A stretch of DNA of 64,000 bases from Octopus bimaculoides (GCF_001194135.2 NC_069009.1:744336-808335), one strand, 5' to 3'; positions 6,238 to 59,432 are shown, counted from the stretch's first letter. The notes: generated from the letters alone by a model not told the origin. Made by a program: numbers and translations.

Positions 6238-9200
6238 GTAAAAATATGTGACACTTATTCAGTAGCCATGATAAAACTCCGAGTTTCGGATGCCAGGGTG
6301 GGAGCCCACGCCAACATCTCTTCAGTTATCCGGCCAATTGAAAATTCCTGTGAAAAATGACCGTTAAAAACAAGGGAAAATTACTGTGTAGTGACAAAGC
6401 GCGTCTAAAACTGCGTATATATATATCCTTTGAAATATTACATGTTGTTATTGCTTTTGTTGAATAAAATGTGTTGAAAAAAAAGCCGCAATAATTATGC
6501 ACCATACCCAATTGTAATAGTAAAGTTTATACCTTTCTGAATTAACTCTCCTTAGACACACAAGACAGGCATTCCTCGCTCATTCCCTCATTCTCATATC
6601 ATCCTTACTGTGACTCGCTTACAAAAACTTGCACTAAAATAACTGTCCAGTCAATAATCCTTCACTAAAGTGACAACATTCTGGATTTCTCTTCACATGC
6701 ATGATTTTCCTGCAGACATCAACCATGTCATGCTTACGAACGTGATGTGGGAGAGACCCACAAACTGATGGACAGTGTCCCAATGCATTTGAATAGCTTA
6801 TAAAAGAAAATAGAAATTGAAATGCTTACTTGAAATAAGCATGGATTATTACTGTCAGAATGAGACAGACAAATGATATTATGCAGCCAACGTTAGAAAT
6901 AATAGAGAGGAGTTCACTATTCTTTTCCTTTCCTTTATTTTTGTCATTCCCGTAGACATCCTGCAACAGAAAACAGACGACAACGTATTAGCTCCTCTTC
7001 TTCTCTTCTTCCTTTCATATATATTGATCAATACTTATATAAATTATGAGTGTTCATATAGGTGGGGGGGGGGTAATCTTCTATTACATGTTACAAGATA
7101 ATTAATTCCAATATGAAGCATCACTATCTTTATAATGTATATAAGCGACGTCTGAGTCCAGGTAGAATATACCACCGGTGTTTAAATCTTGAGTTCGAAT
7201 TCACTGAAGGTATATCTTATTATATGTTACAGCACAAATAATTCAAGCTGCTTCGCTTAAACTATCTGTTAACTGAGGACAGACGTCTGACGTGAAATAT
7301 AAGATAAATGATTAACTAGAGATATTAAAAATCTGAAATTGGAATTATTTTGGTAATAAAAGGAATAGAAACGTAAATAGTTATAAAGACAATTGATTTG
7401 ATTCGGTAATGTTTCTGACCGTTGTTGTTAGCACTCCGTCGCTTAACGACGTCGAGGGTTCCAGTTGATCCGATCAACGGAACAGCCTGCTCGTGAAATT
7501 AACGTGCAAGTGGCTGTGCACTCCACAGACACGTGTACCCTTAACGTAGTTCTTGGGGATATTCAGCGTGACACAGTGTGACAAGGCTGACTTAAATGAG
7601 AGGAGAGATCTAAGAGAATCATGAAGCGACCATTGTTTTAACATCTAACAATTTTTATTCTGCTATGGACATCTATTGTATATTAACTATGTATGTATCG
7701 ATTAAAGTACCATTCAGATAGTTTCAACACAATAGATTTTAAATACAAGGGAGATGGCTGTTCCTTTTTGTTGGAGGGATTCTGACGTTTTTAATCGAGG
7801 ACATTAGCTGGGTACATCTAGTGGATAACATCCTAATCTTAGACTAATAGACGATAGCAATAGCAGCATTAACAACAGTGACTTATTACAAAATATCAAT
7901 GTCCCATATTTACTAAAATATCCACCAACATGAAGTTTAATAGTTATTGAAATTATTTATGCATAGGCACAATTGCCAATTTACGGGCAATTAACAACAT
8001 GTCATAATGTTACCAACCATTAGTATAGCAAAACTTGTAAGATGGTAACAGGAACACAATACTTTCTTCCCAGGTTCATAGTCGGATATGTAACAGCCTT
8101 TTGTTGACCAATGTTCAGAGGATTTATCCCAATAGACACATTGTGGGTTGGCAGCATTCTGAAAAAAATTAAATTCTGTTTATTTAATCAAATTAGTTTG
8201 CAATTAAAACACATGTAATTAAGTTTGGCTAAACTGACTAATAAAATATCGAAACAGACCATGACGTAACTGACTATTCCATCTCGTTTATAAATCTATG
8301 TATGTTCTCATAATATCTATTACATGTTATTACATATATCGCCATCACTTGGACTACCATTCAGACTGTTTCTGAAAGGAAGGGATTTGTTCGTGTAGAT
8401 CTGAACTACAACGTGGCATGATGTTCGCGGCGGTAAAATGTTTCATCATAAGTCTTCCTGGTCAGAAATTGCATGAAGGAAAACAACATAAACAGCAACA
8501 ACTACAGTCATAGAAACCCCAAAGAAATTAATCAAATTTAAAATACAGTCATAATCATTGAACGCAATGCCCAAACATATTAAAACAATATACTGCTGAT
8601 ACTAAAACAGAACACAAACAATCGGAAACATATCCAGCACGCACATTGTATAATGAAGATACAATAAGTTATAAATGTCAACAGGGTAACAGCTACTACT
8701 ACTACTACTACTACTTGCGCCGTAGTCAGTGTTTCTGTCAGGAGGTGTAAGGTGTGGCTCTGAAATGAAACATTAACAACGACAGTTATAACAAAACACA
8801 TAATTATTACCTGATCTATTAAGTTGAATGAGATGCTAACTGGTTCATCAAGGTTGGTTATTTTAATGTTAGGAATATTTGCAGCAATAATATGGCTGTT
8901 AATTTTAGTATTTGCTTTGGTAGTAGAGTTTTCTATTATCTGTAAAGAGAAGTCGTTAAATAAATAAATTTATTCCGTAGAAGTGTTTATTAATACATCG
9001 TTAAAGCATGGAACTAAACACTGGAGTTGTGCTTCGACAACATTATTTTAATCAGTACAATAACTTTATACAACATATGAGGAGGAGGCACTCCATCGCT
9101 TACGACGTCAAGGGTTCCAGTTGATCCGATCAACGGAACAGCCTGCTCGTGAAATTAACGTGCAAGTGGCTGAGCACTCCACAGACACATGTACCCTTAA

Positions 9201-12200
9201 CGTAGTTCTCGGGGATATTCAGCGTGACACACAGTGTGACAAGGCTGACCCTTTGAATTACAGGCACAACAGAAACAGGAAGAAAGAGTGAGAGAAAGTT
9301 GTGGTGAAAGAGTACAGTAGGGTTCGCCACCATCCCCTGCCGGAGCCTCGTGTAGCTTTTAGGTGTTTTCGCTCAATAAACACTCAACGCCCGGTCTGGG
9401 AATCGAAACCGCGATCCTATGACCGCGAGTCCGCTGCCCTAACCACTGGGCCATTGTGCCTCCACTCGCACATATACAACCGGCACCAAAAAATTGACGA
9501 ACTTGTTGATATGACTAGCGTGTCCTGGAGCTACTGCCAAAAAAATTTTGAGCTAGGAATTTGGAATGAAAAGACTGGTAGCAAAATCTGTGGTTTTCTT
9601 GCTCACGAAATATCAAAACCAGTCACGACTGAATGGAACTGTTTTCGAAGGCCATCACTGGTGATGAAAGCTGGTGCTGCGGAATTTGCAGATGTGGAAG
9701 AGGTGAAGAAAAAATTGATGGAAGCGCTAAAAAAGCATCACATCAATTTTGTTGTATTAGTATTATTTCTTCCATTATCAAAAAACGTAACAATGAATTC
9801 AAAAATAACCAGAAGAAATATTTCCAAGCTTTGTACCATACCCTATATAGCTTATCCTCTTTCATATTAAACAAGGAGATCCTTGAAAATGTTGCGTGTT
9901 CTTCTTCTTTCAGATGTCTTATTAAACTCTTAGGCAATGAAATATAATCCATCATATCTTCCACTTTTGAGTTTGAGTTGTTATAGATCTGGTGGAGGAA
10001 AATAAAAGAAAAATTTAAATTGATAAATATAAAACGCAACTACTGTTGAATGTTGCTGACGTCGTAAAAATTTATAAACTTTCGACTGAACGTGAGGTGA
10101 AATAATTTTTTAAATAGTCGAGCAAATCGACCCCAGGACTTATTCTTTGGAAGCCTAATCCTTGTTCTATCGGTCTCTTTTGCTGAACCGCTAAGTTACA
10201 GAGACATAAACACACCAGCATCGGTTGTCAAGCGATGTTGGGGGGGGGGGGACAAACACAGGCACAAAAATATACACACACATACACACATATATATACA
10301 TATATACGACGGGCTTCTTTCTGTTTTCCGTCTACCAAATCCACTCTCAAGGCTTTGGTCGGCTCGAGGCTATAGTAGTAGACACTTGCTCAATGTGCCA
10401 CGCAGTGGGACTGAACCCAGAATCCATGTGGTTGTTAAGCAAGCTACTTACCACACAGCCACTCCTGCCAAGTTTTGTAACATCTACATTATATGACAAT
10501 AAAAATATATTTCATTCTGATGCATTTTATCAACCTTGGTATTCAAAATAAATTACCAATATGAGAGTAAATCAAGAGACAGTATCGTACCTCACTCCTC
10601 GCTTCCGTTTCATTGGTTCCATATGAAACACCAAAGACCAGACCATTGAAAGTGTCTTTCTCCACTTTGGCAGCACCAATAGCAAGATTAGAATATGAAN
10701 NNNNNNNNNNNNNNNNNNNNNNNNNNNNNNNNNNNNNNNNNNNNNNNNNNNNNNNNNNNNNNNNNNNNNNNNNNNNNNNNNNNNNNNNNNNNNNNNNNNN
10801 NNNNNNNNNNNNNNNNNNNNNNNNNNNNNNNNNNNNNNNNNNNNNNNNNNNNNNNNNNNNNNNNNNNNNNNNNNNNNNNNNNNNNNNNNNNNNNNNNNNN
10901 NNNNNNNNNNNNNNNNNNNNNNNNNNNNNNNNNNNNNNNNNNNNNNNNNNNNNNNNNNNNNNNNNNNNNNNNNNNNNNNNNNNNNNNNNNNNNNNNNNNN
11001 NNNNNNNNNNNNNNNNNNNNNNNNNNNNNNNNNNNNNNNNNNNNNNNNNNNNNNNNNNNNNNNNNNNNNNNNNNNNNNNNNNNNNNNNNNNNNNNNNNNN
11101 NNNNNNNNNNNNNNNNNNNNNNNNNNNNNNNNNNNNNNNNNNNNNNNNNNNNNCAGGGTTCGCCACCATCCCCTGCCGGAGCCTCGTGGAGCTTTTAGGT
11201 GTTTTCGCTAAATAAACACTCACAACGCCCGGTCTGGGAATCGAAACCGCGATCCTGTGACCGCGAGTCCGCTGCCCTAACCACTGGGCCATTGCGCCTC
11301 CACAACAACAAATGTGATCTGAATTTTACCTGCTGACAGTTCTGTTAGCTTTTTCTGCCTCAACCAAAATCTTCTCTGGTGCATTTATCATATCGTTGAT
11401 ACCATGAAGTATTTTGCGCAGTATTATATTGACGAACGCATTTGATATCAATAGCGCCATTTCCTCAAGCATGGCTATAGCCGAGACAATATCTTCTTTG
11501 AAATCCACTGATTTCTGTGAAATATTCAGGAGTTTTCTTGAAAATTCCTCAACAGTCCCTGCAATGGAAAATTTTAGATAAAGTTTACAGAAATTTACAT
11601 CCGCACTGAGACAAAACAACAGAAGCAAATACAACACATTTAATGAATCACTGGGAGTTAATTAACAATTTACTGTAGGGCGAAAATTGCTAAATATATG
11701 TTCAGTTCATGAGCTGCATACTCATTGTTATGCACCTCAGTGTCTCCTTGTTTGTAGTATTAAGTGGAATTCTCTATAGTTGAATAAGACATACACTTGC
11801 TAGTGCGAGACGTTGACAACCAATGAGCTGTAATACACCAGCCTTCATAAACCACAGTTAATCTGAACGAAGTTATTCTTTCAATGACAAGGTGAACTGC
11901 GATAAAAACGGTTCGCAGGTCTACTACTTGATATTGATTAGTCATCCTCAAGGCCTATATGAAAATTTGAAGTCACCAAAGCACTGAAGGTTTATGAAGA
12001 TTTCTTTTTAATTTTATAGTGTTACAGCAACAGATGAATGTGATAAATTATTCTATGGTAAACTATGTTTAGTAACTATGCATCTGTAGTAAATCATCTT
12101 AGTAAATATGTATCTGTAAGAAATCAGGTGGATTAAATCAGAAACTAAACAACGCTTACCCATGAAATCATTCTTGTTACATTGGTTTCCGCTGCAGCAA

Positions 12201-13955
12201 GCTACACACGAAGTGCCATTGGCCCATTTATTGCACGTAAAAGTATTGTTTCTCATAGCTTCAAGGCAGTTTCTGTATGTCCTGCAAGATCTTTCAAACT
12301 TCAGTGTGACGCCATTCATTGATAGTTTATATTGGCATACAGGCTGTAACAATAAATATAAAAGTCATATACTACTACCACAGCAAGTACTACTACAACT
12401 ACTATTGCTAACAGCAGAAAGAGCAACGCGGGATGTATAGCAAACAAAAAGTCGAATAATTACTCCAGATGATTTTTAAGAAAACAAATGAAGACGAAAC
12501 AAACAGACGATGTGTTACAAGATAATTGTGTATGTAATCCCTTGTAAAATCTTGTTGGCACTCCGTCGCTTACGACGTCGAGGGTTCCAGTTGATCCGAT
12601 CAACGGAACAGCCTGCTCGTGAAATTAACGTGCAAGTGGCTGAGCACTCCACAGACACGTGTACCCTTAACGTAGTTCTCAGGGATATTCAGCGTGACAC
12701 AGTGTGACAAGGCTGACCCTTTGAATTACAGGCACAACAGAAAGAGGAAGTAAGAGTGAGAGAAAGTTGTGGTGGAAGAGTACAGCAGGGTTCGCCACCA
12801 TCCCCTGCCGGAACTTCGTGGAGCTTTAGGTGTTTTCACTCAATAAACACTCACAACGTCCGGTCTGGGAATCGAAATCGCGATCCTATGACCGCGAGTT
12901 CACTGCCCTAACCACTGGGCCATTGCGCCTCCAACCTTGTAAAATATATTCCACTTATAAAGAATGACGTCCGTTTATTAACCCTATTTTATATACAACG
13001 ATGTTTGTCGGAGAGAAAATAGAGAAGCTGTCACTGGACCAGCGAGCATCTCATGATTTTTAACAAGACACTTCCTTTCATGATACTCCAGTCTACTCTG
13101 TTGAAAATGAGTGCCAACTTAGTGCTGGTCATCCTCTTCTCTCTGTCTTTAATTGTCAAATCTTTGATATTCCGTAATTCCATATTCAATATGCTATGAT
13201 AGCAAGACCGAGAGGGTGTGTGTGTCTGTTTGTGACTACATAGGTACCTAAAACAATTAGTGAAAGAATGGTACAAACTACCAGGCCATACTGACGGCTG
13301 CGGATATATTTCAACAGAAAAGGAGAAAGTAAAATTTTAGTTTACCTCTACTCCTGGACAGCCTGTCCTTTCTGAATCATTGCACATCATCCCTGAACAT
13401 GTTTGACACTCCAAGTTCTTTTGAAATAACGAGTAATCTACAGAATATAAAAGAATATTCGTATTTCGGAACCAAATAGTGTAATGTACAGCACCAACAG
13501 GAAACATTTACTAAGGGACTCATACATATTAATATTGGAACCAATATATTTCAGACATATAAAAGAAATTATCAATTAAAACTACAAACATGTTTTTGTT
13601 TTCATTTGGAAACGCTTCAGTTTTGTTAAAAATTCAACAAAACAAAGCGTAGAGGTTACTTGTTCGAATGCTGGAGGTTTATTGTATCTCAGAAATGTCA
13701 TTATGCCAATAATAAACACACGTACTGATTCTAATTTGCTTCTTTATTATTCGTCAATTGGTTAGTTATTTAATGAATTAACACATCAATTACATGATTA
13801 ATCATTCAATTAAACTCTAAATCAGACTCCAGGTCAGTTTCAGATCTGTCTGTTTGCCTGCCAGATTTTTGCTTCTATATATATATGTAGTTGTATGGAT
13901 GGCAATGGGATTGTACAAGAGAGAGAAAAATAGATAGATAGATAGATAGATAGAT

Positions 13956-24698: not shown

Positions 24699-27023
24699 TG
24701 TGTGTGCGTGTATGTGTGTTTGTGTGTGTGTTTGTATATATATATGTTTATAATTATATAAATAAATATATGTAGCCCGTTGTATATTTACAGGCACATA
24801 AAGAGAGACTGTGATTTACAGAACAGAAAATGGAGAGGAAAGAAGTAGGAGAAGACAAATATATCGAAATGCAGGGTCAAAGGGAAAAGTATCAGCAACG
24901 TTGAATCAACTTACAAAAGTACTAAACTTGGAAGATTTTCGATGAGTTCAATATTCGAGATTCTGTTATTGGATAATCGTCTGTAAGACAGAAGAGAATT
25001 ATGGAAGAGATTAGTCATAAAAGCTTTGATGTTATGTCGAATTAATTAGATGCAGGAAGAGAAAACAAAGGTAGATGTGAAAAAATAAGTCGAAGAAGAC
25101 GATGATAACGATGAGTGAAGATTATAATGGGTGAAGATTATAAGGAGTGAAGATTATAATGAGTGTTGAATATGTTTGATGAAGAAAATGATGACAATAA
25201 CAACGTTGATGATGTTCACTGGTTCGAAGTGGTGATGCTGTTGGCGATCGTGCTGCTGTTGTCAATTGTGATGATGCGTGGTGGCGGTGGTGGCAGTGGT
25301 GGTGGCGGCGGTGGCGGTGGTGGTGGTGATGGTGGTGTTGATGATGATAATGATGGTGATGATGATCATGATCATGATGTTGGTAACGATGATTATGAGG
25401 CTGCTGCTCATTGTCCTTATAAAGGATGCAAGCATGTCCTCCATTCTGCCATGGGTTGTATAAACTGTTTACACCTGCGTTAGTGAGATGCATGTGGTGC
25501 ATTGTAAGAAAATTGCGTATTTTTAAATCAGTTTTCGAGATCTCAACGACGGACCATCTTAAGGATGTGAAACAGAGACATGGATACTGGAAACTGAACG
25601 CGTTTTTCTCAACAGGGGGAGAGAGTTTATGTGTGTTGTTGTTGTTGTTGTTGTTGTTGGCACTCCGTCGCTTACGACGTCGAGGGTTCCAGTTGATCCG
25701 ATCAACGGAACAGCCTGCTCATGAAATTAACGTGCAAGTGGCTGAGCACTCCACAGACACGTGTACCCTTAACGTAGTTCTCGGGGATATTCAGCGTGAC
25801 ACACAGTGTGACAAGGCTGACCCTTTGAATTACAGGTGCAACAGGAAGTAAGAGTGAGAGAAAGTTGTGGTGGAAGAGAACAGCAGAGTTCGCCACCATC
25901 GCCTGCCGGAGCCTCGTGGAGCTTTAGGTGTTTTCGCTCAATAAACACTCACAACACCCGGTCTGGGAATCGAAACCGCGATCCTATGACCGCGAGTCCG
26001 CTGCCCTAACCACTGGGCCATTGCGCCTCCACTTATGTATGTTAGAGAAGGGTAAAAGGTTAAGAAAGAAAGATAGGAAGACATTAATTATTTAGAAATA
26101 TACAGTCAAGAAATGGCATCAGCAAGATCGATCTGACTTACAGAATCTCTAATTTGTGAAGATTTACAAATGACTCTTTTCCAATTTTCGAGATCTTATT
26201 ACCGTATAGATTTCTGTAAGAGAATAGAGAATTGATAACATATAATATAGAAGAGATTCGTTATAAAATTTTAAATATTACGTTTAATGAATTAAATGCA
26301 GAAATGCAGAAGTGAAAAAATTAGATGGAGAAGATGATAATGACGTATGAAGATTATGATGATAACGATGAAGGTAGGTGATGATGATGATGAGGAAATG
26401 TATTACAAATCCAACGTCTGTTTCTGGGGGCACATGGTCTATAATAGTGTTTGTAGATTGATTCTGTCATAGGACGAGACGAGTTTCCGTCTTCATGGAT
26501 TAGATCTTACATTTGAAATGCTAAAGGAAAGACGTTCAAACATCATCTTTGAACTTCTTTCCTTTAACATTAGTAAAATAAATTAAACGGAAACGTTCTC
26601 TGATGGACAAACCCTTTGCAGTTCATGGCTCCCGCCGCTAGAATCAACTTGATGCGAATCTAAACCCTGAGGAACAGTCTAGTTTACTTCGCAGCTAGTA
26701 ACATATCGACTTCTTTTACTATAACATAACATGGTGTTTAAAGCTGTGAGATTTACACCGTAAGGTATTGGCTGAGAACATAACCAATGAGCGTTTAAAA
26801 CACTGAAAGTGGAAAATATCTAAAAGTTGTCTACTACTTACATATATTTAACATTCGGAAGAAAGTACTTTGGAACCGATGTCAGGTTGAGATTTGAACA
26901 ATTTACATGCTCAGAACCATTACATGTACACATACAAAAAATGTCTGCACGTATCTCAAAAGATAACCTCATGTATAATATCAGCAAAAATGTTAGTATT
27001 ACTTGATATCTTTGACTGGGCAT
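2409..27023 (-). CDS. Gene A: LRR + Ly6/uPAR-like + GAIN adhesion GPCR (29 visible coding exons, at least ~1090 aa)
   Basis: Exons chained by GT-AG sites with consistent phases, except one GAIN exon whose 5' part is in a gap. Signal peptide, LRRs, LRR-CT, LU domain, GPS (CSCYHLTSFAILM) and 7TM motifs (LLHYF, LLGLPW, NTLQGMFIF). Exon structure mirrored in gene B. Confidence 0.93.
2811..3000 (+). mobile_element. SINE family A, 5' half
   Basis: Head gtggaggcgcaatggc... matches the full-length copies. Confidence 0.88.
3083..3468 (-). CDS. Gene A TM5-TM7 exon (CWLSKTAFYAAFLAPVAIILLFN...LLGLPW...NTLQGMFIF)
   Basis: Family-2 7TM signatures; acceptor tttgtag; donor A|GTAAGT conserved in the paralog. 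Confidence 0.95.
4224..4296 (-). CDS. Gene A TM4 exon (GLPIVIVIITLAISNTNNYIRIEKV)
   Basis: 73 nt, ttttcag/gtaagt, phase 1-2; paralog exon has the same length. Confidence 0.92.
4356..4612 (-). mobile_element. SINE family B, 5'-truncated
   Basis: Reverse complement of the 1850-2100 type sequence. Confidence 0.88.
4827..4968 (-). CDS. Gene A TM3 exon (AVAALLHYFLLSSFMWMIVEAIHIY...)
   Basis: 142 nt; adhesion-GPCR TM3 motif LLHYFLL..F.WM..EA; canonical splice sites. Confidence 0.95.
5180..5269 (+). mobile_element. SINE A/B 3' tail fragment
   Basis: tgcacgttaatttcacgagc...gccaacaacaac. Confidence 0.85.
5335..5600 (-). mobile_element. Diverged SINE family B copy
   Basis: Degenerate tail and body. 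Confidence 0.7.
5752..5875 (-). CDS. Gene A TM2 exon (TLWKLIASKILVNLCSSL...AVCR)
   Basis: 124 nt; KIL.NLC.SL motif; ttccag/gtaagt. Confidence 0.93.
6270..6330 (-). ncRNA. Type I minimal hammerhead ribozyme motif
   Basis: GAUAA-CUGAAGA-extended stem II-(C)GAAA-CUCGGAG-UU-UUAUC; stem I 5 bp, palindromic stem III. Confidence 0.65.
6830..6960 (-). CDS. Gene A post-GPS linker + TM1 exon (DVYGND...LSIISNVGCIISFVCLILTV)
   Basis: 131 nt; TM1 motif LS.IS.VGC.IS..CL.LT; ttgcag/gtaagc. Confidence 0.93.
7421..7590 (-). mobile_element. SINE A 3' part
   Basis: Shared tail sequence. Confidence 0.85.
8018..8158 (-). CDS. Gene A GPS exon (PQCVYWD...WSTKGC...CSCYHLTSFAILM)
   Basis: Canonical GPS C-W-W-C-C-C pattern with HL|T; 141 nt, phase 0-0. 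Confidence 0.96.
8811..8939 (-). CDS. Gene A GAIN exon (IIENSTTKANTKINSHIIAA...LDEPVSISF)
   Basis: 129 nt, phase 0-0; GAIN-B-like NS.IIAA and L.EPV.I.F; paralog has the same length. Confidence 0.92.
9087..9465 (-). mobile_element. Full-length SINE family A
   Basis: Complete head-to-tail match with other copies. Confidence 0.92.
9475..9745 (+). mobile_element. Internally deleted mariner transposase remnant
   Basis: Frameshifted IDELVDMTSVSWSYCQK / GMKRLVAK / AITGDESWC / FADVEEVKKK motifs. Confidence 0.75.
9842..9988 (-). CDS. Gene A GAIN exon (IYNNSNSKVEDMMDYISLPKSL...DKLYR)
   Basis: 147 nt; ISLP motif; ccaccag/gtatgg; paralog has the same length. Confidence 0.92.
10115..10469 (-). mobile_element. 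SINE family C
   Basis: tRNA-like head ggagtggctgtgtggtaag; conserved ccttgtgagtggatttggtagacggaaac; internal (TA/CA)n. Confidence 0.88.
10591..10699 (-). CDS. Gene A GAIN exon, 5' part in gap (SYSNLAIGAAKVEKDTFNGLVF...RSE)
   Basis: Open frame with N.A motif ending at donor gtacga; acceptor lies inside gap 10700-11153. Confidence 0.8.
11154..11302 (-). mobile_element. SINE family A 5' part, running into gap
   Basis: Head match. Confidence 0.88.
11330..11558 (-). CDS. Gene A GAIN helical-subdomain exon (TVEEFSRKLLNISQ...EAEKANRTVS)
   Basis: 229 nt, phase 1-2; cattgcag/gtaaaa; homolog at 48119-48347. Confidence 0.9.
12160..12343 (-). CDS. Gene A Ly6/uPAR-like domain exon 2 (PVCQYK...SCVACCSGNQCNKNDFM)
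   Basis: 184 nt, phase 0-1; ends in the CCxxxxCN motif of three-finger folds. Confidence 0.9.
12551..12934 (-). mobile_element. Full-length SINE family A
   Basis: 11-bp TSD ccttgtaaaat (12540-12550 / 12935-12945). Confidence 0.93.
13346..13437 (-). CDS. Gene A Ly6/uPAR-like domain exon 1 (YSLFQKNLECQTCSGMMCNDSERTGCPGVE)
   Basis: 92 nt, phase 1-0; LxCxxC start typical of LU domains; paralog has the same length. Confidence 0.9.
14745..14905 (-). CDS. Gene A LRR-CT exon (DLSGNKDMMCGCHL...GEC...SQCQ)
   Basis: 161 nt, phase 2-1; LSGN..C.C.L cap with four Cys. Confidence 0.88.
15874..15945 (-). CDS. Gene A LRR exon (YLGHNQMQKYEDGAFLFLPDIYHV)
   Basis: 72 nt, phase 2-2, tttcag/gtatgt. Confidence 0.9.
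16617..16836. repeat. Inverted repeat, ~85-bp arms and 47-nt spacer
   Basis: 16621-16702 is the near-perfect reverse complement of 16750-16833. Confidence 0.9.
16704..16739 (-). ncRNA. Minimal hammerhead motif in the spacer of an inverted repeat
   Basis: GAU-CUGAAGA-A-GGAAU/AUUCC-GAAA-UAU-C-AUC; stem I only 3 bp. Confidence 0.55.
16987..17058 (-). CDS. Gene A LRR exon (DLSHNNISTIKQGTFENLYSLQSL)
   Basis: 72 nt, phase 2-2, ttacag/gtaagt. Confidence 0.92.
17348..17419 (-). CDS. Gene A LRR exon (YLGNNTLSIIAEGTFLNLTSLLTL)
   Basis: 72 nt, phase 2-2. Confidence 0.92.
17867..17938 (-). CDS. Gene A LRR exon (DLSHNQLSKIKESTFKTLHSLRDL)
   Basis: 72 nt, phase 2-2. Confidence 0.92.
18078..18149 (-). 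CDS. Gene A LRR exon (DLSFNNISNIEESAFKNLGNLQEL)
   Basis: 72 nt, phase 2-2. Confidence 0.92.
18922..18993 (-). CDS. Gene A LRR exon (DLSYNQISIIKESTFKTLHSLRDL)
   Basis: 72 nt, phase 2-2; close copy of 17867-17938 including flanks. Confidence 0.92.
19320..19391 (-). CDS. Gene A LRR exon (GLSYNQISNIEEIAFKNLHSLRYL)
   Basis: 72 nt, phase 2-2. Confidence 0.9.
19539..19610 (-). CDS. Gene A LRR exon (HLSHNKISNIEESTFKTLGSLKDL)
   Basis: 72 nt, phase 2-2. Confidence 0.9.
19830..20040 (+). mobile_element. SINE family C 3' half
   Basis: ccgatagaataagtactagg...gtaaaagagtaaaa tail. Confidence 0.85.
20255..20326 (-). CDS. Gene A LRR exon (DLTGNEIFKIDQNSFVNVTRLEYL)
   Basis: 72 nt, phase 2-2. Confidence 0.9.
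20487..20645 (+). mobile_element. tRNA-like SINE family D fragment
   Basis: ggcagaatcgttag...gagttcaaattccgccgaagtcgactttgcctttcatcc; related fragment near 47795-47960. Confidence 0.65.
20814..20885 (-). CDS. Gene A LRR exon (FLYNNKISNIERESFENLPELADL)
   Basis: 72 nt, phase 2-2. Confidence 0.92.
21165..21600. repeat. Compound (GAT)n/(GATGAGT) low-complexity tract
   Basis: Direct inspection. Confidence 0.9.
22259..22330 (-). CDS. Gene A LRR exon (YLSNNKISIIEQRSFENLERLRTL)
   Basis: 72 nt, phase 2-2. Confidence 0.92.
23131..23315. repeat. Near-perfect palindrome, 90-bp arms and 5-nt loop
   Basis: One mismatch seen; left arm starts at a gap edge. Confidence 0.9.
23904..23975 (-). CDS. Gene A LRR exon (DLSYNDITIIKKKTFKNLCSLQEL)
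   Basis: 72 nt, phase 2-2. Confidence 0.9.
24915..24980 (-). CDS. Gene A short LRR exon (RLSNNRISNIELIENLPSLVLL)
   Basis: 66 nt, phase 2-2, same splice context as the 72-nt exons. Confidence 0.88.
25636..26032 (-). mobile_element. Full-length SINE family A with (CAA)n tail
   Basis: Complete match. Confidence 0.92.
26142..26213 (-). CDS. Gene A first LRR exon (NLYGNKISKIGKESFVNLHKLEIL)
   Basis: 72 nt, phase 2-2. Confidence 0.92.
26842..27023 (-). CDS. Gene A first coding exon: signal peptide + LRR-NT (MPSQRYQVILTFLLILY...CMCTC...VNCSNLNLTSVP)
   Basis: Hydrophobic leader, LRR-NT C-C-C-C and L.SVP; donor AT|GTAAGT; acceptor 20 nt upstream of the ATG (exon starts 27043). Confidence 0.92.
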
Positions 27024-29789: not shown

Positions 29790-30148
29790 TTGTTGGCACT
29801 CGTCCTCCTCCTTGGAACTTCGTCGCTTACGACAGCCTGCTCGTGAAATTAACGTGCAAGTGGCTGAGCACTCCACAGACACGTGTACCCTTAACGTAGT
29901 TCTCGGGGATATTCAGCGTGACAAGGCTGACCCTTTGAATTACAGGCACAACAGAAACAGGAAGTAAGAGTGAGAGAAAGTTGTGGTGGAAGAGTACAGC
30001 AGGGTTGGCCACCATCGTCTGCCGGAGCCTCGTGGAGCTTTAGGTGTTTTCGCTCAATAAACACTCACAACACCCGGTCTGGGAATCGAAACTGCGATCC
30101 TATGACCGCGAGTCCGCTGCCCTAACCACTGGGCCATTGCGCCTCCAC
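29790..30148 (-). mobile_element. SINE family A, duplicated with the orphan LRR exon
   Basis: Same right-hand flank (acttatgtatgttagagaag) as the 25636-26032 copy; internal deletions. Confidence 0.88.
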
Positions 30149-30257
30149 TTATGTATGTTAGAGAAGGGTAAAATGTTAACAAAGAAAGATAGGAAGACAT
30201 TAATTATTTAGAAATATACAGTCAAGAAATGACATCAGCAAGATCGATCTGACTTAC

Positions 30258-30329
30258 AGAATCTCTAATTTGTGAAGATTTACAAATGACTCTTTTCCAA
30301 TTTTCGAGATCTTATTACCGTATAGATTT
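30258..30329 (-). pseudogene. Orphan duplicate of gene A first LRR exon
   Basis: Identical by eye to 26142-26213, with near-identical flanks and the adjacent SINE, but lies upstream of the ATG exon. Confidence 0.8.
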
Positions 30330-30870
30330 CTGTAAGAGAATAGAGAATTGATAACAACGTCTGTTGAACTCTTTTCCATCACTGAAAGACGCAAGCGACC
30401 AGTTGTCGTCCGTCCAAAGAATGTGATGCCGTTAAATGGCAAGAATTTCGAAGGAGAAATTCACATACATAATAGTAAAATTAAATATATCTAATGTTTG
30501 AAGAGACGATTGTTTTCTGCTGAAGATGGAGATGAGAAAGGTGACTCATTTAGTTAAAGACCAAGACTAATATTGCAGAATCTTTAACGTGGCAGGCAAA
30601 TTGCTCGGTGACATTTTGTGGTTATCTTTAACACTGCCGAGGTCGACATTACCTGTCCTTGTTTCAAGGTCGATAAAATAAGGGCCACTTGTGCACTGTA
30701 GGCTATGTAACGGACTTATTCCCCACCACCCGAAACTACTTCTCTGGTGTCAAATTGTGAAAGCAGTCTCTGAATGTATGGTAATATCTGTATAAAGACA
30801 AATGAAGAGCTGTGACTTAGGTGGAGTTGGAGGGAAAGCGGGAATGTAGCCAAGGATTCAAGATCTAGAG

Positions 30871-33484: not shown

Positions 33485-33537
33485 TTATGCGTTCGTTTCT
33501 GCTTTTTTACATTCTGTTTCATGATTGGAGATTGAAC
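33485..33537 (-). CDS. Gene B terminal coding exon ((S)SISNHETECKKAETNA*)
   Basis: tttccag acceptor, phase 1; homologous to 2409-2467. Confidence 0.8.
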
Positions 33538-34953
33538 CTGGAAACATAATGAGAAAACTATATACATATATGTTAATTTTTAGACTCAATAGTTCACAGT
33601 CCTTAAATTTTATACATAACAACAATTGTCATCAACTCTTTTCTCACAAGAGAAAATAATGTTACTACAGAAGAAGTAGGGATGAACACCAAGGTTTATG
33701 TTGAAAAGAGTAATTACACTCACAGGCAATAATAATTTTCGGGAGTACGTTGTAAGATATTAGTAAATATTGGTTCAGGAATATTTTCCAGAAAAACCGG
33801 GCAACTTTATATAAAAAAGATGAACACTTTAGCTCTATTCAGTTAAAGGTTTGCATGGTTGTGTATATACTTTACGTTGGCCTATAGCTGTATGTATATT
33901 TATTCATTCTGCATTTGTGGTTTAAAATTCTACACTGCTAAATGAGTATTTATTTGGCATATATGTGTGTATACATGGACATGTACGATATATTTCATAT
34001 TTGCCACGTAAAGCTATGAATTGTATTTCTGATCAGTTACCTTAAGAACAGACGTATTCTGGTACTCGTCTTGGTGCCAGTCACTTTGGAAGCTGGTTGC
34101 CTTACTTTGGCAATAGCTGTATTGTTTATTACAAGGCATCAAATGACCATCAAATACCCACAAACTAAATTCCATACGCATTTTTTTTTTACTTGTTTCA
34201 GTCTTTTGACTGTGGCCATGCTGGAGCACCGCCTTTAGTTGAGCAAATCGACCCCAGGACTTATTCTTTGGAAGCCTAGTACTTATTCTATCGGTCTCTA
34301 TTGCCGAACCGCTAAGTTACGGGGACATAAACACACCAGCATCGGTTGACAAACACAGACACACAAACACATACACACATACATATATATATATATATAC
34401 ATATATACGACGGGCTTCTTTCAGTTTCCGTCTACCAAATCCACTCACAAGGCTTTGGTCGGTCCGAGGCTATAGTAGAAGACACTTGCCGAAGGTGCCA
34501 CGCAGTGGCACTGAACCCGGGACCATGTGGTTGGTAAGCAAGCTACTTACCACACAGCCACTCCTACGTCTACATATATTAACTTACTAGTTTTTGAATC
34601 ATGCAGCTTGATTGATCCCAGGTTTTAATCTCTTCATCCAACTTTGAAAATTCCTATTTCGTTTTGTTTGTTCATAAATATGTCCGTCTTCGTACATTGG
34701 ATAGTATTTCGCCGGCTGACTGAATATCATTCGAGGAAATATGTTGCTTTTGCTATAATGTGGATTTACACAATGCGATATGTAATACGTATTGTATTAG
34801 AGATAAATAATCAGGTTACTCAAACATGTGAAGTGATGTTTTGAACTATCATTCCTTCATTGTTTACTACACACAAGCACACACGCACATGCACTCACAC
34901 GAGCCCACACAAACACGCACGCGCACACACACACATATATACACAGACACACA

Positions 34954-34993
<40 letters not shown>

Positions 34994-35039
34994 ACTATGT
35001 ACATATACTCTATACATACATGCATATACACACACAGAC

Positions 35040-35071
<32 letters not shown>

Positions 35072-35938: not shown

Positions 35939-35993
<55 letters not shown>

Positions 35994-38092: not shown

Positions 38093-38151
<59 letters not shown>

Positions 38152-41100: not shown

Positions 41101-41493
41101 ATAGTTTCGACACAATAGATTTTAAATGAAGGAGAGATGACTGATTCTCTCTGCCTCTTCGCATCTTTGTTGGAGGAATCCGCATGCATTTAATTGAGAA
41201 TGGTAGCTGGGTACTCCTAGTAGACACCATTCTGAGTTTAAAGTTATAAATGACAGCCATAGCAACAAGAACAACAGCGACTTATTACAAAATATCTACC
41301 TCACATATTTTTTTTTTTTACTTGTTTCAGTCATTTTCGACTGCGGCCATGCTGGAGCACCGCCTTTTTAGTCGAGCAAATCGACCCCAGGACTTATTCT
41401 TTGTAAGCCTGGTACTTATTCTATCGACTCTATTGCCGAACCGCTAAGTGACGGGGACGCAAACACACCAGCATCGATTGTCAAGCAATGCTA

Positions 41494-41567
<74 letters not shown>

Positions 41568-42506: not shown

Positions 42507-42537
<31 letters not shown>

Positions 42538-44108: not shown

Positions 44109-44143
<35 letters not shown>

Positions 44144-47100: not shown

Positions 47101-49231
47101 NNNNNNNNNNNNNNNNNNNNNNNNNNNNNNNNNNNNNNNNNNNNNNNNNNNNNNNNNNNNNNNNNNNNNNNNNNNNNNNNNNNNNNNNNNNNNNNNNNNN
47201 NNNNNNNNNNNNNNNNNNNNNNNNNNNNNNNNNNNNNNNNNNNNNNNNNNNNNNNNNNNNNNNNNNNNNNNNNNNNNNNNNNNNNNNNNNNNNNNNNNNN
47301 NNNNNNNNNNNNNNNNNNNNNNNNNNNNNNNNNNNNNNNNNNNNNNNNNNNNTTATTTGCTTTTTTCATTTTAAATTTGCTTTAACCCTAACCCTAACCC
47401 TAACCCTAGGGTTAGGGTTAGGGTTAGGGTTAGGGTTAATTGTTTCAGAATCGTTTGTTTATGTAGTCGGCACTTAATGTATATCGGCTGAATGGACGTC
47501 GTGATTGGTTGAAATTACAGAAATACGATAACTTTAACATGGAATAACTTATGGATTTCTTCTTTTTTAAAAGAAGACTAAGAGAAAAAGATGTTTTATA
47601 TGACACATTCTACCAGTGTTCCAAGTTTCAAAGTGTTTCGTTAATGAAAAATGTGGCCCCCGTTTTAAAAAAGATCCTTTCCCTTTCCAGAAAATAGTGA
47701 TAACAGCGTGTGTAAACTATCATTGACGGTCCCATGGATGGTCCCATATTTAATTGTGGTTTATATTTGTTAATGAATTGTTTCTCTTAGCTTCAGGCGG
47801 CGAGCTGGCAGAATGGTTAGCCGAAGAATATGCATCATGTCGTCAGTCTTTAGGTTCAGGTTTCAAATTTCATTGAGTTCAACTTTGCCTTTCAATCTTT
47901 CGGGGACAATAAAATACGTATTACTGAAATGCTGAGGTCAATGTAATTAACTCCCCCATCCAGCAAATTTCGTAGTGTCTCTGTAGTAGAAGGGATTATG
48001 TTAGCTTTATTCGGTACCTGTGTGCTGCATGTATTATTATATTTTGTATTTAAATTGCAATCTCTGTCAAGTTTTGTAACATATCTACATTATATGACAA
48101 TAAAAATACGTNNNNNNNNNNCTGACAGTTCTGTTAGCTTTTTCTGCCTCAACCAAAATCTTCTCTGGTGCGTTTATTATATTGTTGATACTATGAAGTA
48201 TTATGCGCAGTATTATATTGACGGACTCACGCCGGATCAATGGCATCATTTTCTCAAGATTTTTTACTACTAAGTCAATATCTTCTTTTTTCAAATGCAA
48301 TTTCTGTGAAATATTTAGGAGTTTTGTTGTAACCGGTTCAATATTTTCTGCAATGGAAAATTTAACAAAATTTAAGGAAATTTACAGCTGCTTTGAGACG
48401 AAATTATGTGCTGTCTGGGGAGACAAAACAAAGTTGTGACGAAATATTAGATGCAAATTAAACACAACAATTAATGAATCACTGTTAGGCTTGTTGTCTC
48501 TTGAGGTCTCTGGGTGAGACTTGGATCCAACTTGTACAAATGCAAAGCAAAAGTCAAACATAAAACAATAATAATAATAAATTCCCTGATGCAGTACCAG
48601 GCAGTGGCTCTCATGGCTTCTGATCTTAATTTATTGGAAGTGTTATCATGTACATTGTTTTGTCTTGGTATAAAAGATGGGCTACAGCAAATATTATTAT
48701 TATTATTATNNNNNNNNNNNNNNNNNNNNNNNNNNNNNNNNNNNNNNNNNNNNNNNNNNNNNNNNNNNNNNNNNNNNNNNNNNNNNNNNNNNNNNNNNNN
48801 NNNNNNNNNNNNNNNNNNNNNNNNNNNNNNNNNNNNNNNNNNNNNNNNNNNNNNNNNNNNNNNNNNNNNNNNNNNNNNNNNNNNNNNNNNNNNNNNNNNN
48901 NNNNNNNNNNNNNNNNNNNNNNNNNNNNNNNNNNNNNNNNNNNNNNNNNNNNNNNNNNNNNNNNNNNNNNNNNNNNNNNNNNNNNNNNNNNNNNNNNNNN
49001 NNNNNNNNNNNNNNNNNNNNNNNNNNNNNNNNNNNNNNNNNNATTATTTATGTTTGACTTTTGTTTTGCATTTATACAAGTTGGATCCAAGTCTCACCCA
49101 GAGACCTCAAGAGACAACAAGTTAGAAGTTCATGTAGGTGTTATGCCTAGGGTACCATATATTTGGATTTGTACAGTTTTGTTGTAGTGAATGTTTAAGA
49201 AACCATAAGAAAATTATGTGTTTGCTTTAAA

Positions 49232-49344: not shown

Positions 49345-52300
49345 TTATATCCTAAGCACAAGGCCATGGAAATTATTGGGAATGGGGGCTAGTTTCGACT
49401 CTCTGACATCTGAGTTCCAAACGTTGCAGAGATCAACTTTGCGTTTGTTACTTTCCAGGTCAATAAAAAACAGTATCCGTCCAGGCACGTTTCGTTCTGT
49501 GTTCAAATCTCACTATGGCATTTCGATGGTTTAACATAGCTCCCCGGACACCTTGCGTGTCACTAGTGAAGGAGAACCTACTTTTGATGGCGATGATGAT
49601 GCCGACAATGAAGAAAAAGATGATAGTAATGATCTATACGTGATCGCGACAGAAATGTTAAGAAACCCATTACTTACCGTCATCGATTAACGTCATGTCA
49701 CTTTGCTGTACTCCCAAATCACGCAATGCTTGGGAAGTGTTCAAAATGTTACTAATGTTCCGCAAAACATGATCTTTATTATCACTTGTAATAAGGACTG
49801 TACGGTAAATAGTAAATATCTCTGTGCTTTGGTACAACCTAAAATAGAAATTTAAAAAAAATATTAGTTTCAGCAACGCTAACCAGAATGTTTTAGTACA
49901 CGTCAATCTAACTGGTTTTTAAAAGGTTATCTTATCCACGTAGTGGAGGCGCAATGGCTCAGTGGTTAAGGCAGCGGACTCGCGGTCATAGGATCGTGGT
50001 TTCGATTCCCAGACCGGGCGTTGTGAGTGTTTATTGAGCGAAAACACCTAAAAGCTCCACGAGGCTCCGACAGGGGATGGTGGCGAACCCTGCTGTACTC
50101 TTTCACCACAACTTTCTCTCACTCTTACTTCCTCTTTCTGTTGTGCCTGTAATTCAAAGGGTCAGCCTTGTCACNNNNNNNNNNNNNNNNNNNNNNNNNN
50201 NNNNNNNNNNNNNNNNNNNNNNNNNNNNNNNNNNNNNNNNNNNNNNNNNNNNNNNNNNNNNNNNNNNNNNNNNNNNNNNNNNNNNNNNNNNNNNNNNNNN
50301 NNNNNNNNNNNNNNNNNNNNNNNNNNNNNNNNNNNNNNNNNNNNNNNNNNNNNNNNNNNNNNNNNNNNNNNNNNNNNNNNNNNNNNNNNNNNNNNNNNNN
50401 NNNNNNNNNNNNNNNNNNNNNNNNNNNNNNNNNNNNNNNNNNNNNNNNNNNNNNNNNNNNNNNNNNNNNNNNNNNNNNNNNNNNNNNNNNNNNNNNNNNN
50501 NNNNNNNNNNNNNNNNNNNNNNNNNNNNNNNNNNNNNNNNNNNNNNNNNNNNNNNNNNNNNNNNNNNNNNNNNNNNNNNNNNNNNNNNNNNNNNNNNNNN
50601 NNNNNNNNNNNNNNNNNNNNNNNNNNNNNNNNNNNNNNNNNNNNNNNNNNNNNNNNNNNNNNNNNNNNNNNNNNNNNNNNNNNNNNNNNNNNNNNNNNNN
50701 NNNNNNNNNNNNNNNNNNNNNNNNNNNNNNNNNNNNNNNNNNNNNNNNNNNNNNNNNNNNNNNNNNNNNNNNNNNNNNNNNNNNNNNNNNNNNNNNNNNN
50801 NNNNNNNNNNNNNNNNNNNNNNNNNNNNNNNNNNNNNNNNNNNNNNNNNNNNNNNNNNNNNNNNNNNNNNNNNNNNNNNNNNNNNNNNNNNNNNNNNNNN
50901 NNNNNNNNNNNNNNNNNNNNNNNNNNNNNNNNNNNNNNNNNNNNNNNNNNNNNNNNNNNNNNNNNNNNNNNNNNNNNNNNNNNNNNNNNNNNNNNNNNNN
51001 NNNNNNNNNNNNNNNNNNNNNNNNNNNNNNNNNNNNNNNNNNNNNNNNNNNNNNNNNNNNNNNNNNNNNNNNNNNNNNNNNNNNNNNNNNNNGATCTAGT
51101 GCAGGGGTCTTCAAATTGTGGTCCGCGGACCACAGGGGGTCCGCAAGGACAAGACAGGGGGTCCGTGGACAGCAAATACTTTTTATGGGCAATTTGATTT
51201 TATATATGTTTTTTTAACCGAAATCTTTTAATTGACAATAAACCTATTTGTTAAATACTGTTAAATAAATAAATGCAAAAATATATATTATTTTAAGGAA
51301 ATATTTATGAATAAATTTCATAAGCGTTTATAAGGGTCCCTAAGGTAAAGCCTGAAATATAAAGGGGTCCGCAAGTCAAAAATTTTGAAAACCCCTGTTA
51401 TATAGCACATGTATGTGTGTGAGAGAGAGGGGGAGCGTTAGAAAATATACACCTACTCACAGCTCTAGATACATTTTCAAAATGGTTTTTATATTCATTG
51501 CAGTTTTTGGAAATCGGATGTCGGTCAATGGTATAAATCAGATGATATTCAAAGGTATTGTTCCAATCTATTCAAGAACATAAAAGACAAAAAAAAAAAC
51601 CCCAAAAAACTGAGATATTGCTATTATATATGAGACACATGTCGCAAAGTTCAACGTTGATGGGGTGACCATTCGGCACAAGTTCAAAATGCAAGATTCC
51701 TTCCACGTTCCACCAAACAGAGATCATGATCTTTCCAAATTGATTCCGCTTTGGAACGGATCGAGGAATTTGAATTTTGGGGAACCAACGCTTGCTCTGA
51801 TCGTGATTGACCAGGTAGACCCACTTGTCGCCTGATGTCACAATTCGCATCTAAAACCGGTCATCCAACTGAATGTTGAGCAATTAGCGGCAAATTTCTA
51901 TTCTCTTGGCAGCTTGCGCTTCGGTCAATTCGTAATCTTTTTGTGGCTGTTTGTGGATAAGATCAGGTTGCTCGAGAGGAACGTGACACTAACTGAATGG
52001 ACACACACCACAAAAATATAAAACAGCATTATTTTAACACAGCGCACAAACTTTTTCTTCAATCTAATACATTTATTACAAAGATATACATATGTATACA
52101 TACAATGAAACATCTCATATATTAACTATTACACTATGCTCTTATTAATCATTCATCTGTAATAAATTAGATGGATTAAATCAGAAATAAAACAACAATT
52201 ACCCATGAAATCATTCTTGTTACATTGGTTTCCGCTGCAGCAAGCTACACACGAAGTGCCATTGGCCCATTCATTGCATGTAGAAGTATTGTTTCTCATA

Positions 52301-53314: not shown

Positions 53315-53931
53315 TATACATATATACGACGGGCTTCTTTCAGTTTCCGTCTACCAAATCCACTCACAAGGCTTTGGTTGGCCCGAGGTTATAGTAGAAG
53401 ACACTTGCCCAAGGAGCCACGCAGTGGGACTGAACCCGGAACCATGTGGTTGGTAAGCAAGCTACTTACCACACAGCCACTCCTACACCTAAAATTTTTT
53501 AAAGAAAAGGAAGCAACAGAAGCAAGAAGGATTCTACTAACATTTGCTTTGCGTATGATTCATTATAGATATTGGTTCGTCTTCTTCGTTGTCTAAACCT
53601 CGTAGACATTTGCCCAGGACATCCACAGTTCTGTTGTATGTACTGGTCATATAATTTACCACGGCCGGGAGATGATATCCACACTTCAAGTTCTTATTGC
53701 CGATGAGGTTGCTGCAATTATAAATAGAACTTTAACTGATTAAGGTTCAGAAAAATAGAGAAACCTACGCTTGATTTGTCTCAGTAATGCCACGCCCCCT
53801 GGCTCACAAAACTAGAAATTCTCCCATCTGCTGTCAATTGCAGTAAAATTTTGGTCGTACAACATTCATATCCGCTGCAAATTGGGCGCATTGGAGGAAA
53901 TCCTTCGAAATTTTTGTGTAATTACGGAGAC

Positions 53932-59394: not shown

Positions 59395-59432
<38 letters not shown>

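Follow-up and report, generated by a model that had tools for sequence, protein, structure and literature searches.

A probable three-finger (LU) module in the ectodomain of octopus adhesion receptors with an ADGRG6-like core

Two small cysteine-rich exons occur twice in a 64-kb stretch of the Octopus bimaculoides genome (NC_069009.1:744336-808335; hereafter the window, with positions counted from its first letter), once in each of two tandem paralogous genes on the minus strand, here called gene 1 and gene 2. They raise the question of which domain they encode, and whether this domain belongs to the extracellular part of a receptor. A reading made earlier from the DNA alone (the original prediction) had taken them for a Ly6/uPAR-like (LU, or three-finger) domain within an adhesion G-protein-coupled receptor (GPCR) bearing leucine-rich repeats (LRR). 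The DNA of the window is eukaryotic, rich in AT and in repeats, and interrupted by 22 assembly gaps. We consider it highly probable that the domain encoded by the two exons is a genuine LU of the six-disulfide Lynx2/LYPD6 subtype, and that it forms an internal ectodomain module of an ADGRG6-like adhesion GPCR. The four exon copies are:

13437-13346, minus strand: gene 1 LU exon A, 92 nt, (N)YSLFQKNLECQTCSGMMCNDSERTGCPGVE; finger 1 and part of the 'head', Cys 1-4
12343-12160, minus strand: gene 1 LU exon B, 184 nt, PVCQYKLSMNGVTLKFERSCRTYRNCLEAMRNNTFTCNKWANGTSCVACCSGNQCNKNDFM(G); fingers 2 and 3, helix, Cys 5-12, CCxxxxCN
53064-52973, minus strand: gene 2 LU exon A, 92 nt, identical in length and splice phases to the gene 1 copy
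52386-52203, minus strand: gene 2 LU exon B, 184 nt, also identical in length and splice phases to its gene 1 counterpart

In gene 1, exon A lies between the acceptor ...tattctgtag/ and the donor /gtaaac, and exon B between ...attgttacag/ and /gtaagc (a slash marks a splice junction or a cleavage site), both acceptors being of the polypyrimidine-ag type. The intron 5' of exon A is in phase 1 (the LRRCT exon at 14905-14745 ends ...CAA A/), the one between the two exons is in phase 0, and the one 3' of exon B is again in phase 1 (...ATG G/), the next exon (11558-11330) opening with /GG ACT. Splicing yields N-YSLFQKNLECQTCSGMMCNDSERTGCPGVE/PVCQYKLSMNGVTLKFERSCRTYRNCLEAMRNNTFTCNKWANGTSCVACCSGNQCNKNDFM-G, with 12 Cys, LxCxxC at its start and CCxxxxCN at its end. 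Translation and splice-site mapping thus bear out the coordinates, sizes, phases, cysteine count and motifs of the original prediction. The phase-1 boundaries that it had noted are those of canonical LU exon sets, in which the mature domain is encoded by two exons flanked by phase-1 introns (PMC6600238), and this arrangement is found in both window paralogues.

Whether the module is an LU domain was addressed with sequence profiles, built first from 17 Octopus modules and then, after adding 11 more divergent ones, from 28 sequences (profile A2). An exhaustive hidden Markov model search of 1.84 billion representatives, which supplied the divergent modules, found just 28 relatives. A word-indexed homologue search with the LU profile gave only six Octopus fragments, and the full-length and non-Octopus members came only from the exhaustive search. 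Against the PDB, a phmmer search with the LU sequence reached an E-value of only about 2, and the 17-sequence Octopus profile found LYPD1 at E=0.09. The 28-sequence profile matched LYPD1/Lynx2 at E=7.8e-5, over the whole domain and with 12/12 Cys in register, and LYPD6 at E=0.0087; all 13 of its PDB matches are three-finger proteins, the remainder being toxins, SLURP1, Lynx1 and TGF-beta/activin receptor ectodomains. Remote relatives reached through the family profile matched LU-clan Pfam families only (UPAR_LY6, UPAR_LY6_2, Toxin_TOLIP and Activin_recp). With the 28-sequence alignment, AlphaFold2 gave a model (pLDDT 78, pTM 0.68) in which three beta-hairpins form the fingers and residues 54-63 a helix. 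The best 50 Foldseek matches of this model in the PDB are all three-finger structures, led by LYPD6, LYPD6B and Lynx2 (probability 1.00, TM 0.60-0.65) and including Prod1, TGF-beta and activin receptor ectodomains, Lynx1, GPIHBP1, toxins and uPAR. The predicted fold is therefore three-fingered, as originally proposed.

The cysteine pattern is not due to chance, because all 12 Cys are invariant across 17 Octopus paralogues and the two window copies, which differ at 21/276 nt, do so with fewer nonsynonymous than synonymous changes per site (pN 0.059 vs pS 0.155, pN/pS ~0.38), while their flanking introns, where alignable, are only 76-81% identical. The introns between exons A and B differ in size (1002 nt in gene 1 vs 586 nt in gene 2), mostly because a copy of a ~380-bp interspersed repeat lies in that of gene 1 (12531-12940) and none in its gene 2 counterpart. 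This repeat has 17 copies in the window at 78-97% identity (e.g. 9087-9464, 25654-26031, 36658-37037 and 42907-43206). Window scans with ARAGORN and Rfam were both empty, recognising no tRNA and no Rfam family in it, and it is therefore not a recognisable tRNA gene or curated RNA family.

The closest known proteins are LYPD1/Lynx2 and LYPD6/LYPD6B (PDB 6zss, 6gbi, 6zso), which give the best profile and structure matches. Lynx2 and LYPD6 are LU proteins of the six-disulfide kind: fingers 1 and 3 each carry an additional bond, and a long helix follows the equivalent Cys (PMC7582953). The octopus module shares with them the 12-Cys layout, in which the four core disulfides are joined by a further one in each of these two fingers, the helix after the sixth Cys and the C-terminal CCxxxxCN (PMC7582953). 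We place it in the six-disulfide subtype because of the LYPD1/LYPD6 matches and of the layout and helix shared with Lynx2, and the alignment with Lynx2 suggests putative disulfides 1-5, 4-6, 7-10 and 11-12 besides the extra loop I and loop III bonds. Unlike these single-domain, GPI-anchored (glycosylphosphatidylinositol-anchored) proteins, the octopus LU lies inside a longer chain, preceded by LRRCT and followed by SEA, HormR or GAIN, and has no GPI signal; sequence identity is only ~20%, and its internal intron is off the canonical position. TGF-beta, activin and BMP receptors also carry an extracellular three-finger fold in a transmembrane signalling receptor and give weak sequence and structure matches, but there it makes up the whole ectodomain of a single-pass kinase, whereas here it is one of five to seven modules in a seven-transmembrane (7TM) receptor.

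The second question is whether the module is part of the receptor chain. Gene 1 comprises, besides the LU exons:

26842..27023, minus strand: exon 1, with start codon, signal peptide and LRRNT (MPSQRYQVILTFLLILYMRLSFEIRADIFCMCTCNG...), identical to the N-terminus of XP_052833921.1 (P0140)
15874..26213, minus strand: 14 LRR cassette exons, 13 of 72 nt and one of 66 nt, all phase 2-2
26213-26142, 24980-24915, 23975-23904, 22330-22259, 20885-20814, 20326-20255, 19610-19539, minus strand: LRR exons 1-7
19391-19320, 18993-18922, 18149-18078, 17938-17867, 17419-17348, 17058-16987, 15945-15874, minus strand: LRR exons 8-14
14745..14905, minus strand: LRRCT exon, 161 nt, phase 2 in, phase 1 out, DLSGNKDMMCGCHLLAVVNYTRNTYNTSVVVKGECHTGLGQETTPILKYSQCQ; conserved in all paralogues
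11330..11558, minus strand: GAIN subdomain-A exon, 229 nt, phase-1 acceptor, phase-2 donor; last exon of P0140
10591..10698, minus strand: 3' part only of a GAIN exon (SYSNLAIGAAKVEKDTFNGLVFGVSYGTNETEARSE), the 5' part (~22-25 codons) lying in assembly gap 10700-11153
9988-9842, 8939-8811, 8158-8018, minus strand: GAIN-B and GPS exons, exact match to XP_014776848.1 (P0015)
6960-6829, 5874-5752, 4968-4825, 4294-4223, 3467-3081, 2465-2412, minus strand: 7TM and C-terminal exons, exact match to P0015, borders within 2 nt (split codons)

From 27023 to 11330, 19 exons are joined by canonical splice sites into a single open frame of signal peptide, LRRNT (a weak Pfam match), 14 LRR, LRRCT (phase 2 to phase 1), the two LU exons and GAIN-A, every LRR exon having an acceptor ...yag/ and a donor /gtaagt or /gtatgt. 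The RefSeq protein P0140 already joins LRR, LRRCT, LU and GAIN-A by the same splice sites. The GAIN-A exon is homologous to the GAIN-A part of the relatives P0001, P0047 and P0020, and GAIN itself is a weak match in paralogues. Downstream, the stretch from 9955 to 2412 corresponds residue for residue to XP_014776848.1 ('GPR126-like', Octopus bimaculoides). The assembled protein of ~1120 aa matches Pfam LRR_8 (8e-87), GPS (5.4e-13, residues 774-815; motif CSCYHL/TSFAILM) and 7tm_2 (3.7e-38, residues 833-1068), and ends ...AETTF. A GPS directly before a secretin-like 7TM makes it an adhesion GPCR (class B2). The order in gene 1 is signal-LRRNT-14 LRR-LRRCT-LU-GAIN/GPS-7TM, which upholds the claim of an LU domain inside the ectodomain of an LRR-bearing adhesion GPCR. 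Pseudogene status was considered for gene 1 and rejected.

The fused architecture is not confined to this locus. A motif count finds LU together with a GPS further downstream in the same chain in 22 predicted proteins, among them XP_052827273.1 (O. bimaculoides, 1010 aa), P0017, P0021, P0025 (O. vulgaris) and P0047; LU and GPS/7TM also share one chain in a partial Argonauta hians protein and in XP_014788728.1, which has a C-terminal Death domain in addition. A Logan contig of 4201 nt from SRR21372857, a more divergent sequence from another species, holds an uninterrupted open reading frame of 1155 aa with the order signal-LRR-LU-SEA-HRM-GAIN-7TM (HRM and HormR both denote the hormone receptor motif). 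This contig must be mRNA, because the family genes have more than 25 introns, and it is transcript-level evidence for the fused architecture in another species. Exon B borders apparently identical to ours are seen in a related ENA genome fragment (P0153).

Gene 2 is the second window paralogue, with the following parts besides its LU exons:

63788..63972, minus strand: exon 1, signal peptide and LRRNT (MFRQNFHVMLTFVLLLYLRLFLEAHAVSDVCKLCECKS...), N-terminus of XP_052833937.1 (P0141)
54769-63108, minus strand: LRR cassettes, one LRR per 72-nt phase 2-2 exon
53542..53711, minus strand: LRRCT exon, 170 nt, Cys 2 and 4 replaced (CGY, QSK)
51461..51567, minus strand: SEA-like exon 1, 107 nt, phase 1 in, phase 0 out, DWNNTFEYHLIYTIDRHPISKNCNEYKNHFENVSRA; in P0141
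49678..49838, minus strand: SEA-like exon 3, 161 nt, phase 2 in, phase 1 out
48122..48347, minus strand: GAIN-A exon, phase-1 acceptor, 3' end adjoining gap 48112-48121
44528-44382, 42793-42665, 42012-41863, 40374-40255, 39104-38982, minus strand: first five of the GAIN-B/GPS/7TM/C-terminal exons
38552-38409, 37454-37383, 36593-36201, 33535-33488, minus strand: last four of these exons

The exons from 33488 to 44528 match exactly the O. bimaculoides model 'ADGRG6 isoform X1' (P0016), and the GPS motif is CSCNHL/TSFALLM. The region of the relatives homologous to SEA-like exon 1 gives weak SEA matches across the whole domain. The middle SEA exon is not visible and may lie inside gap 50175-51092. 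The original prediction had set LU between the LRR-CT and GAIN exons of both paralogues; this stands for gene 1, where a 601-nt intron without a gap separates LU from GAIN-A, but not for gene 2, where the SEA-like exons 51567-51461 and 49838-49678 come between. With paralogue proteins as queries no HRM exon was found in the window, although gaps 48710-49042 and 50175-51092 in gene 2 could hide one.

Several observations weigh against an LU domain carried in one receptor chain. As regards the fold, single LU sequences stay below every Pfam threshold; AlphaFold2 on the 17-sequence Octopus-only alignment gave a pLDDT of 36, and that model was discarded; the Foldseek E-values for the later model are 0.01-0.03, which is usual for 90-residue domains. 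The canonical LU internal intron sits at the tip of loop 2 (PMC6600238), whereas here it falls between E31 and P32, two residues before Cys5 and at the base of finger 2, the predicted loop-2 tip being at residues 42-43. As regards the gene, RefSeq splits gene 1 into XP_052833921.1 ('chaoptin isoform X4', 593 aa) and XP_014776848.1, and gene 2 into 'decorin-like' XP_052833933-38 (424-458 aa) and 'ADGRG6 isoform X1'. Assembly gaps hide one exon of gene 1 and at least one of gene 2, so that continuity from GAIN-A to GAIN-B rests on homology.

Gene 2 alone might be a decaying copy, with its LRR-LU part out of frame with GAIN/7TM and the LU a relic or part of a secreted fragment. It has lost two LRRCT cysteines, its middle SEA exon is not visible, 3/3 RefSeq isoforms of the N-terminal half end prematurely after LU or SEA exon 1, and the GAIN-A sequence with which P0016 opens is not found in the window. 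The cysteines concerned are the second and the fourth, lost together (CGC>CGY, QC>QS). Cys 2 and 4 pair with each other in canonical LRRCT caps, and the change looks like the loss of one disulfide rather than random decay. Moreover, all visible exons are open, with canonical splice sites and compatible phases; the LU retains 12/12 Cys, with pN<pS; a 918-nt gap (50175-51092) lies exactly where the missing SEA exon is expected; and skipping of the SEA exons would also preserve the frame. Decay of gene 2 thus appears unlikely. As for P0016, its residues 1-90 open with a GAIN-A sequence (MISKISEVTETLQQNADFVVVINEKMVPLIP...) unlike the GAIN-A exon at 48347-48122 and not found in the window where it was compared (44529-48347). 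It may lie inside gap 46364-47352, which would give the gene 2 locus two GAIN-A-like exons.

A division of each locus into two genes, a secreted LRR-LU protein upstream of a separate, shorter adhesion GPCR, would mean that LU is never part of a receptor chain. The RefSeq models fit such a division, XP_052833921.1 and XP_052833933-38 stopping soon after LU or GAIN-A and XP_014776848.1 and 'ADGRG6 isoform X1' starting downstream, and several O. sinensis models (P0012, P0013) run into an intron and end just after LU. In gene 1 the GAIN-A donor AG/GTAA (window 11328-11333), read unspliced, gives an immediate in-frame stop (AGG TAA). However, half a GAIN is found in P0140 and the other half in P0015, which begins mid-GAIN, and neither half folds alone; P0015 and P0016 have no signal peptide; the break coincides with assembly gap 10700-11153; strand, order and intron phases are all consistent with one gene; and the paralogues and the mRNA contig of another species hold everything in one chain. 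We find two genes per locus very unlikely. The in-frame stop coincides with the end of 'chaoptin isoform X4', which may be an artefact of the adjoining assembly gap or a real truncated secreted isoform. A softer version, in which full-length receptors and truncated secreted LRR-LU isoforms are both made, is compatible with an LU inside the receptor. Because a GAIN cannot be divided between two proteins, the downstream models have no signal peptide and the break falls at an assembly gap, we read each locus as one gene from LRR to 7TM.

That the module is another small disulfide-rich fold (an HRM variant, a TNFR-like domain or an EGF-like repeat) mimicking the LU cysteine motif is hardly conceivable and was rejected: it could draw on the sub-threshold Pfam scores of single sequences and the uninformative first AlphaFold2 model, but the 13/13 PDB sequence matches and the best 50 Foldseek matches are all three-finger, the remote relatives match LU-clan families only, and an HRM variant, the outcome that would have undone the original prediction, is excluded because a genuine, separate HRM lies downstream in paralogues.

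With the LU domain placed inside an adhesion GPCR, the receptor type can be considered. In the PDB, the GPS/7TM part of gene 1 matches ADGRG6 best (6.6e-50), then ADGRG2 (9.7e-49) and ADGRG4, so that by its best matches the receptor core looks ADGRG6-like. NCBI also names most family members after ADGRG6 (GPR126), and the paralogues share with it the HL/T cleavage motif and, in many cases, the SEA-HormR-GAIN-7TM core. The ectodomain of vertebrate ADGRG6 is CUB-PTX-SEA-HormR-GAIN, its distal CUB folding back to contact HormR/GAIN (PMC6954182). The octopus family, in contrast, has LRRNT-LRR-LRRCT-LU in place of CUB-PTX, and none of the family members scanned gave a match to CUB or PTX; SEA and HormR have been lost from gene 1 as well, and many tandem octopus paralogues stand against one ADGRG6 gene. 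From the 7TM match and the ADGRG6 ectodomain layout, these receptors therefore appear to have an ADGRG6-type core with CUB-PTX swapped for LRR-LU. The original prediction had instead compared them with ADGRA2/ADGRA3 (GPR124/125; LRR-Ig-HormR-GAIN-7TM), which have an N-terminal LRR block with LRRCT in common with them, and NCBI names one octopus paralogue 'ADGRA3'. This comparison did not hold: neither the best 120 GAIN/7TM relatives listed nor the PDB matches include an ADGRA, no Ig domain was found in the octopus family, and LU and SEA are not part of ADGRA. An ADGRA affiliation was accordingly rejected.

The full family order is signal peptide-LRRNT-LRR(n)-LRRCT-LU-SEA-HormR-GAIN/GPS-7TM, often with an E-T-x-hydrophobic tail. 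Between LU and GAIN the paralogues show LU-SEA-HRM-GAIN, LU-HRM-GAIN (P0025), LU-SEA-GAIN (P0062, gene 2) or LU-GAIN (P0047, P0001, gene 1), with an HRM at E=5.8e-6, above the Pfam cut-off, and a SEA at E=3.6e-4 to 0.007 over the whole domain. LU is thus constant in the family, and SEA and HormR are optional phase-1 cassettes. The LU, the SEA exon set and the GAIN-A acceptor of the window all have phase-1 boundaries, and the frame is therefore kept when a cassette is gained, lost or skipped. Gene 2 shows SEA exons only, and gene 1, where both SEA and HormR are absent, is a reduced form with LU directly against GAIN. The suggestion that LU sits where HRM usually does consequently fails, since many paralogues read LU-SEA-HormR-GAIN.

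The LRR block appears variable as well. XP_052833921.1 is identical to our N-terminal model of gene 1 except that one LRR exon (17419-17348) is skipped, which suggests that the number of LRR is changed by cassette-type alternative splicing, one LRR per 72-nt phase 2-2 exon. Isoforms of one O. sinensis paralogue (among P0142 and P0173-P0177) have 477, 501 and 525 aa, i.e. steps of 24 aa. A 530-bp duplicate (94.6% identical; 29832-30356 vs 25710-26240) comprises the ~380-bp repeat and the first LRR cassette exon, and leaves a stray copy of that exon at 30329-30258, ~3.3 kb upstream of gene 1 exon 1.

At the other end, the last small exon (2412-2465 and 33488-33535 in the window; also P0017, P0021, P0022, P0029, P0031 and P0049) encodes a conserved ...AET(T/N/D)(F/L/A) tail, and the tails ETTF, ETNA, ETNF and ETDL of the family resemble a class I PDZ-binding motif. 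One paralogue (P0150/P0162; XP_014788728.1 and XP_052821851.1 in O. bimaculoides) has the order LRR-LU-SEA-HRM-GAIN-7TM followed by a Death domain (Pfam E=3.3e-6), which is cytoplasmic, comes after a Ser/Thr/Gln-rich repeat and matches the sole Death-domain member of Ritschard et al.

How old is the LU insertion? Close relatives of the module are from Octopus species only, and the family is octopus-expanded. It is nevertheless wider than the genus Octopus, as seen from Argonauta, from the divergent transcript and possibly from a scallop protein. Outside the cephalopods the LU profile found only two relatives. The scallop P0156 (Mizuhopecten yessoensis OWF51986.1), a 285-aa fragment found at E=9e-6, has LU and then a region that resembles the SEA-like module of the family in sequence but has no Pfam SEA match; a look-up of its genomic context returned no record. 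The gastropod P0158 (Babylonia areolata XP_076467484.1), of 114 aa, is a stand-alone LU (E=2e-4; Pfam UPAR_LY6 0.024). The LU+SEA pairing may thus be older than the cephalopods; the scallop fragment and the SRR21372857 transcript are no more than leads on the age of the insertion. In a crude motif screen, as distinct from a search of a domain-architecture database, CCxxxxCN occurred in none of ~80 non-mollusc adhesion GPCR relatives retrieved.

The receptors themselves belong to a family already described: it is the 'group 3' of Ritschard et al. 2019, an adhesion GPCR expansion specific to octopus, for which co-localisation, positive selection and LRR in 5/22 members were reported (PMC6408891). 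The tissues in which its expression is reported for O. bimaculoides are the axial nerve cord, the suckers and the skin (PMC6408891). The two sets agree in co-localisation, in GPS and 7TM, in the occasional LRR and in one Death-domain member; the text of that paper, in contrast, never mentions Ly6/LU, nor does it discuss SEA and HormR (PMC6408891). Its only trace of LU is an unnamed supplementary InterProScan line, SSF57302 (snake-toxin-like), for residues 136-215 of A0A0L8GYR2 (PMC6408891). NCBI calls one family fragment 'ly6/PLAUR domain-containing protein 1-like'. We found no paper describing LU in an adhesion GPCR, and none in the library searched that combines UPAR_LY6 with 7tm_2; a 2026 consortium review of adhesion GPCRs leaves three-finger, Ly6, snake toxin, octopus and cephalopod unmentioned. 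Of the novelty originally suggested, the architecture therefore stands and the receptor class does not: this is a real, undescribed domain architecture within an already described gene family.

What the module does may be sketched from known LU domains, which bind their partners via the fingers and the concave sheet (PMC6600238). Among the Octopus paralogues the LU fingers vary most (1.3-1.5 bits, vs 0.7-0.8 bits for helix and linker). LU is a plausible specificity-bearing binding module, because its fingers vary, its cysteines are invariant and pN<pS. The fingers and the LRR solenoid would then form a putative joint surface for partner binding. An intact HL/T site, a TSFAILM that resembles a tethered agonist and a complete 7TM suggest that the receptor works as adhesion GPCRs usually do, in that binding to or pulling on the ectodomain would, after GAIN autoproteolysis, expose the tethered agonist (TSFAILM...). 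By analogy with the N-terminal CUB of ADGRG6, packing of LU against GAIN/HormR may set the conformation of the ectodomain, which in gene 1, with LU directly on GAIN, the module could influence. The family probably gained its LU through phase-1 exon shuffling, at a time before it expanded in octopods.

Nicotinic-type Cys-loop receptors are targets of Lynx2/LYPD1 and LYPD6/6B, which bind and modulate them, and octopus suckers have expanded nicotinic-like chemotactile receptors. It is a long shot, based on this analogy, that the receptor-borne LU keeps a Lynx2/LYPD6-like activity and docks, in cis or in trans, on acetylcholine-receptor-like channels including the chemotactile receptors of the suckers. 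If it did, LRR-LU adhesion GPCRs would link G-protein signalling to ion-channel receptors, either to contact with them or to their occupancy, and no such wiring between receptors is known from elsewhere.

Irrespective of its partners, LU appears here as an internal phase-1 cassette in a mosaic receptor, across octopods (Octopus, Argonauta) and in a divergent transcript, which makes it a clear case of a shuffled module, whereas a review of LU proteins considers LU unlikely to be a bona fide mobile module. Adhesion GPCRs thereby gain a type of domain that the 2026 consortium review does not contain, in receptors where the distal, ligand-binding end of an ADGRG6-like core has been swapped, LRR-LU for CUB-PTX, and the resulting form then diversified by tandem duplication, by optional SEA/HormR cassettes and probably by splicing of LRR cassettes. 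As to annotation, RefSeq divides each of the window genes between an LRR protein and a headless GPCR, and leaves the LU unnamed. For cephalopod biology, the 'group 3' expansion gains a concrete, testable candidate binding module.

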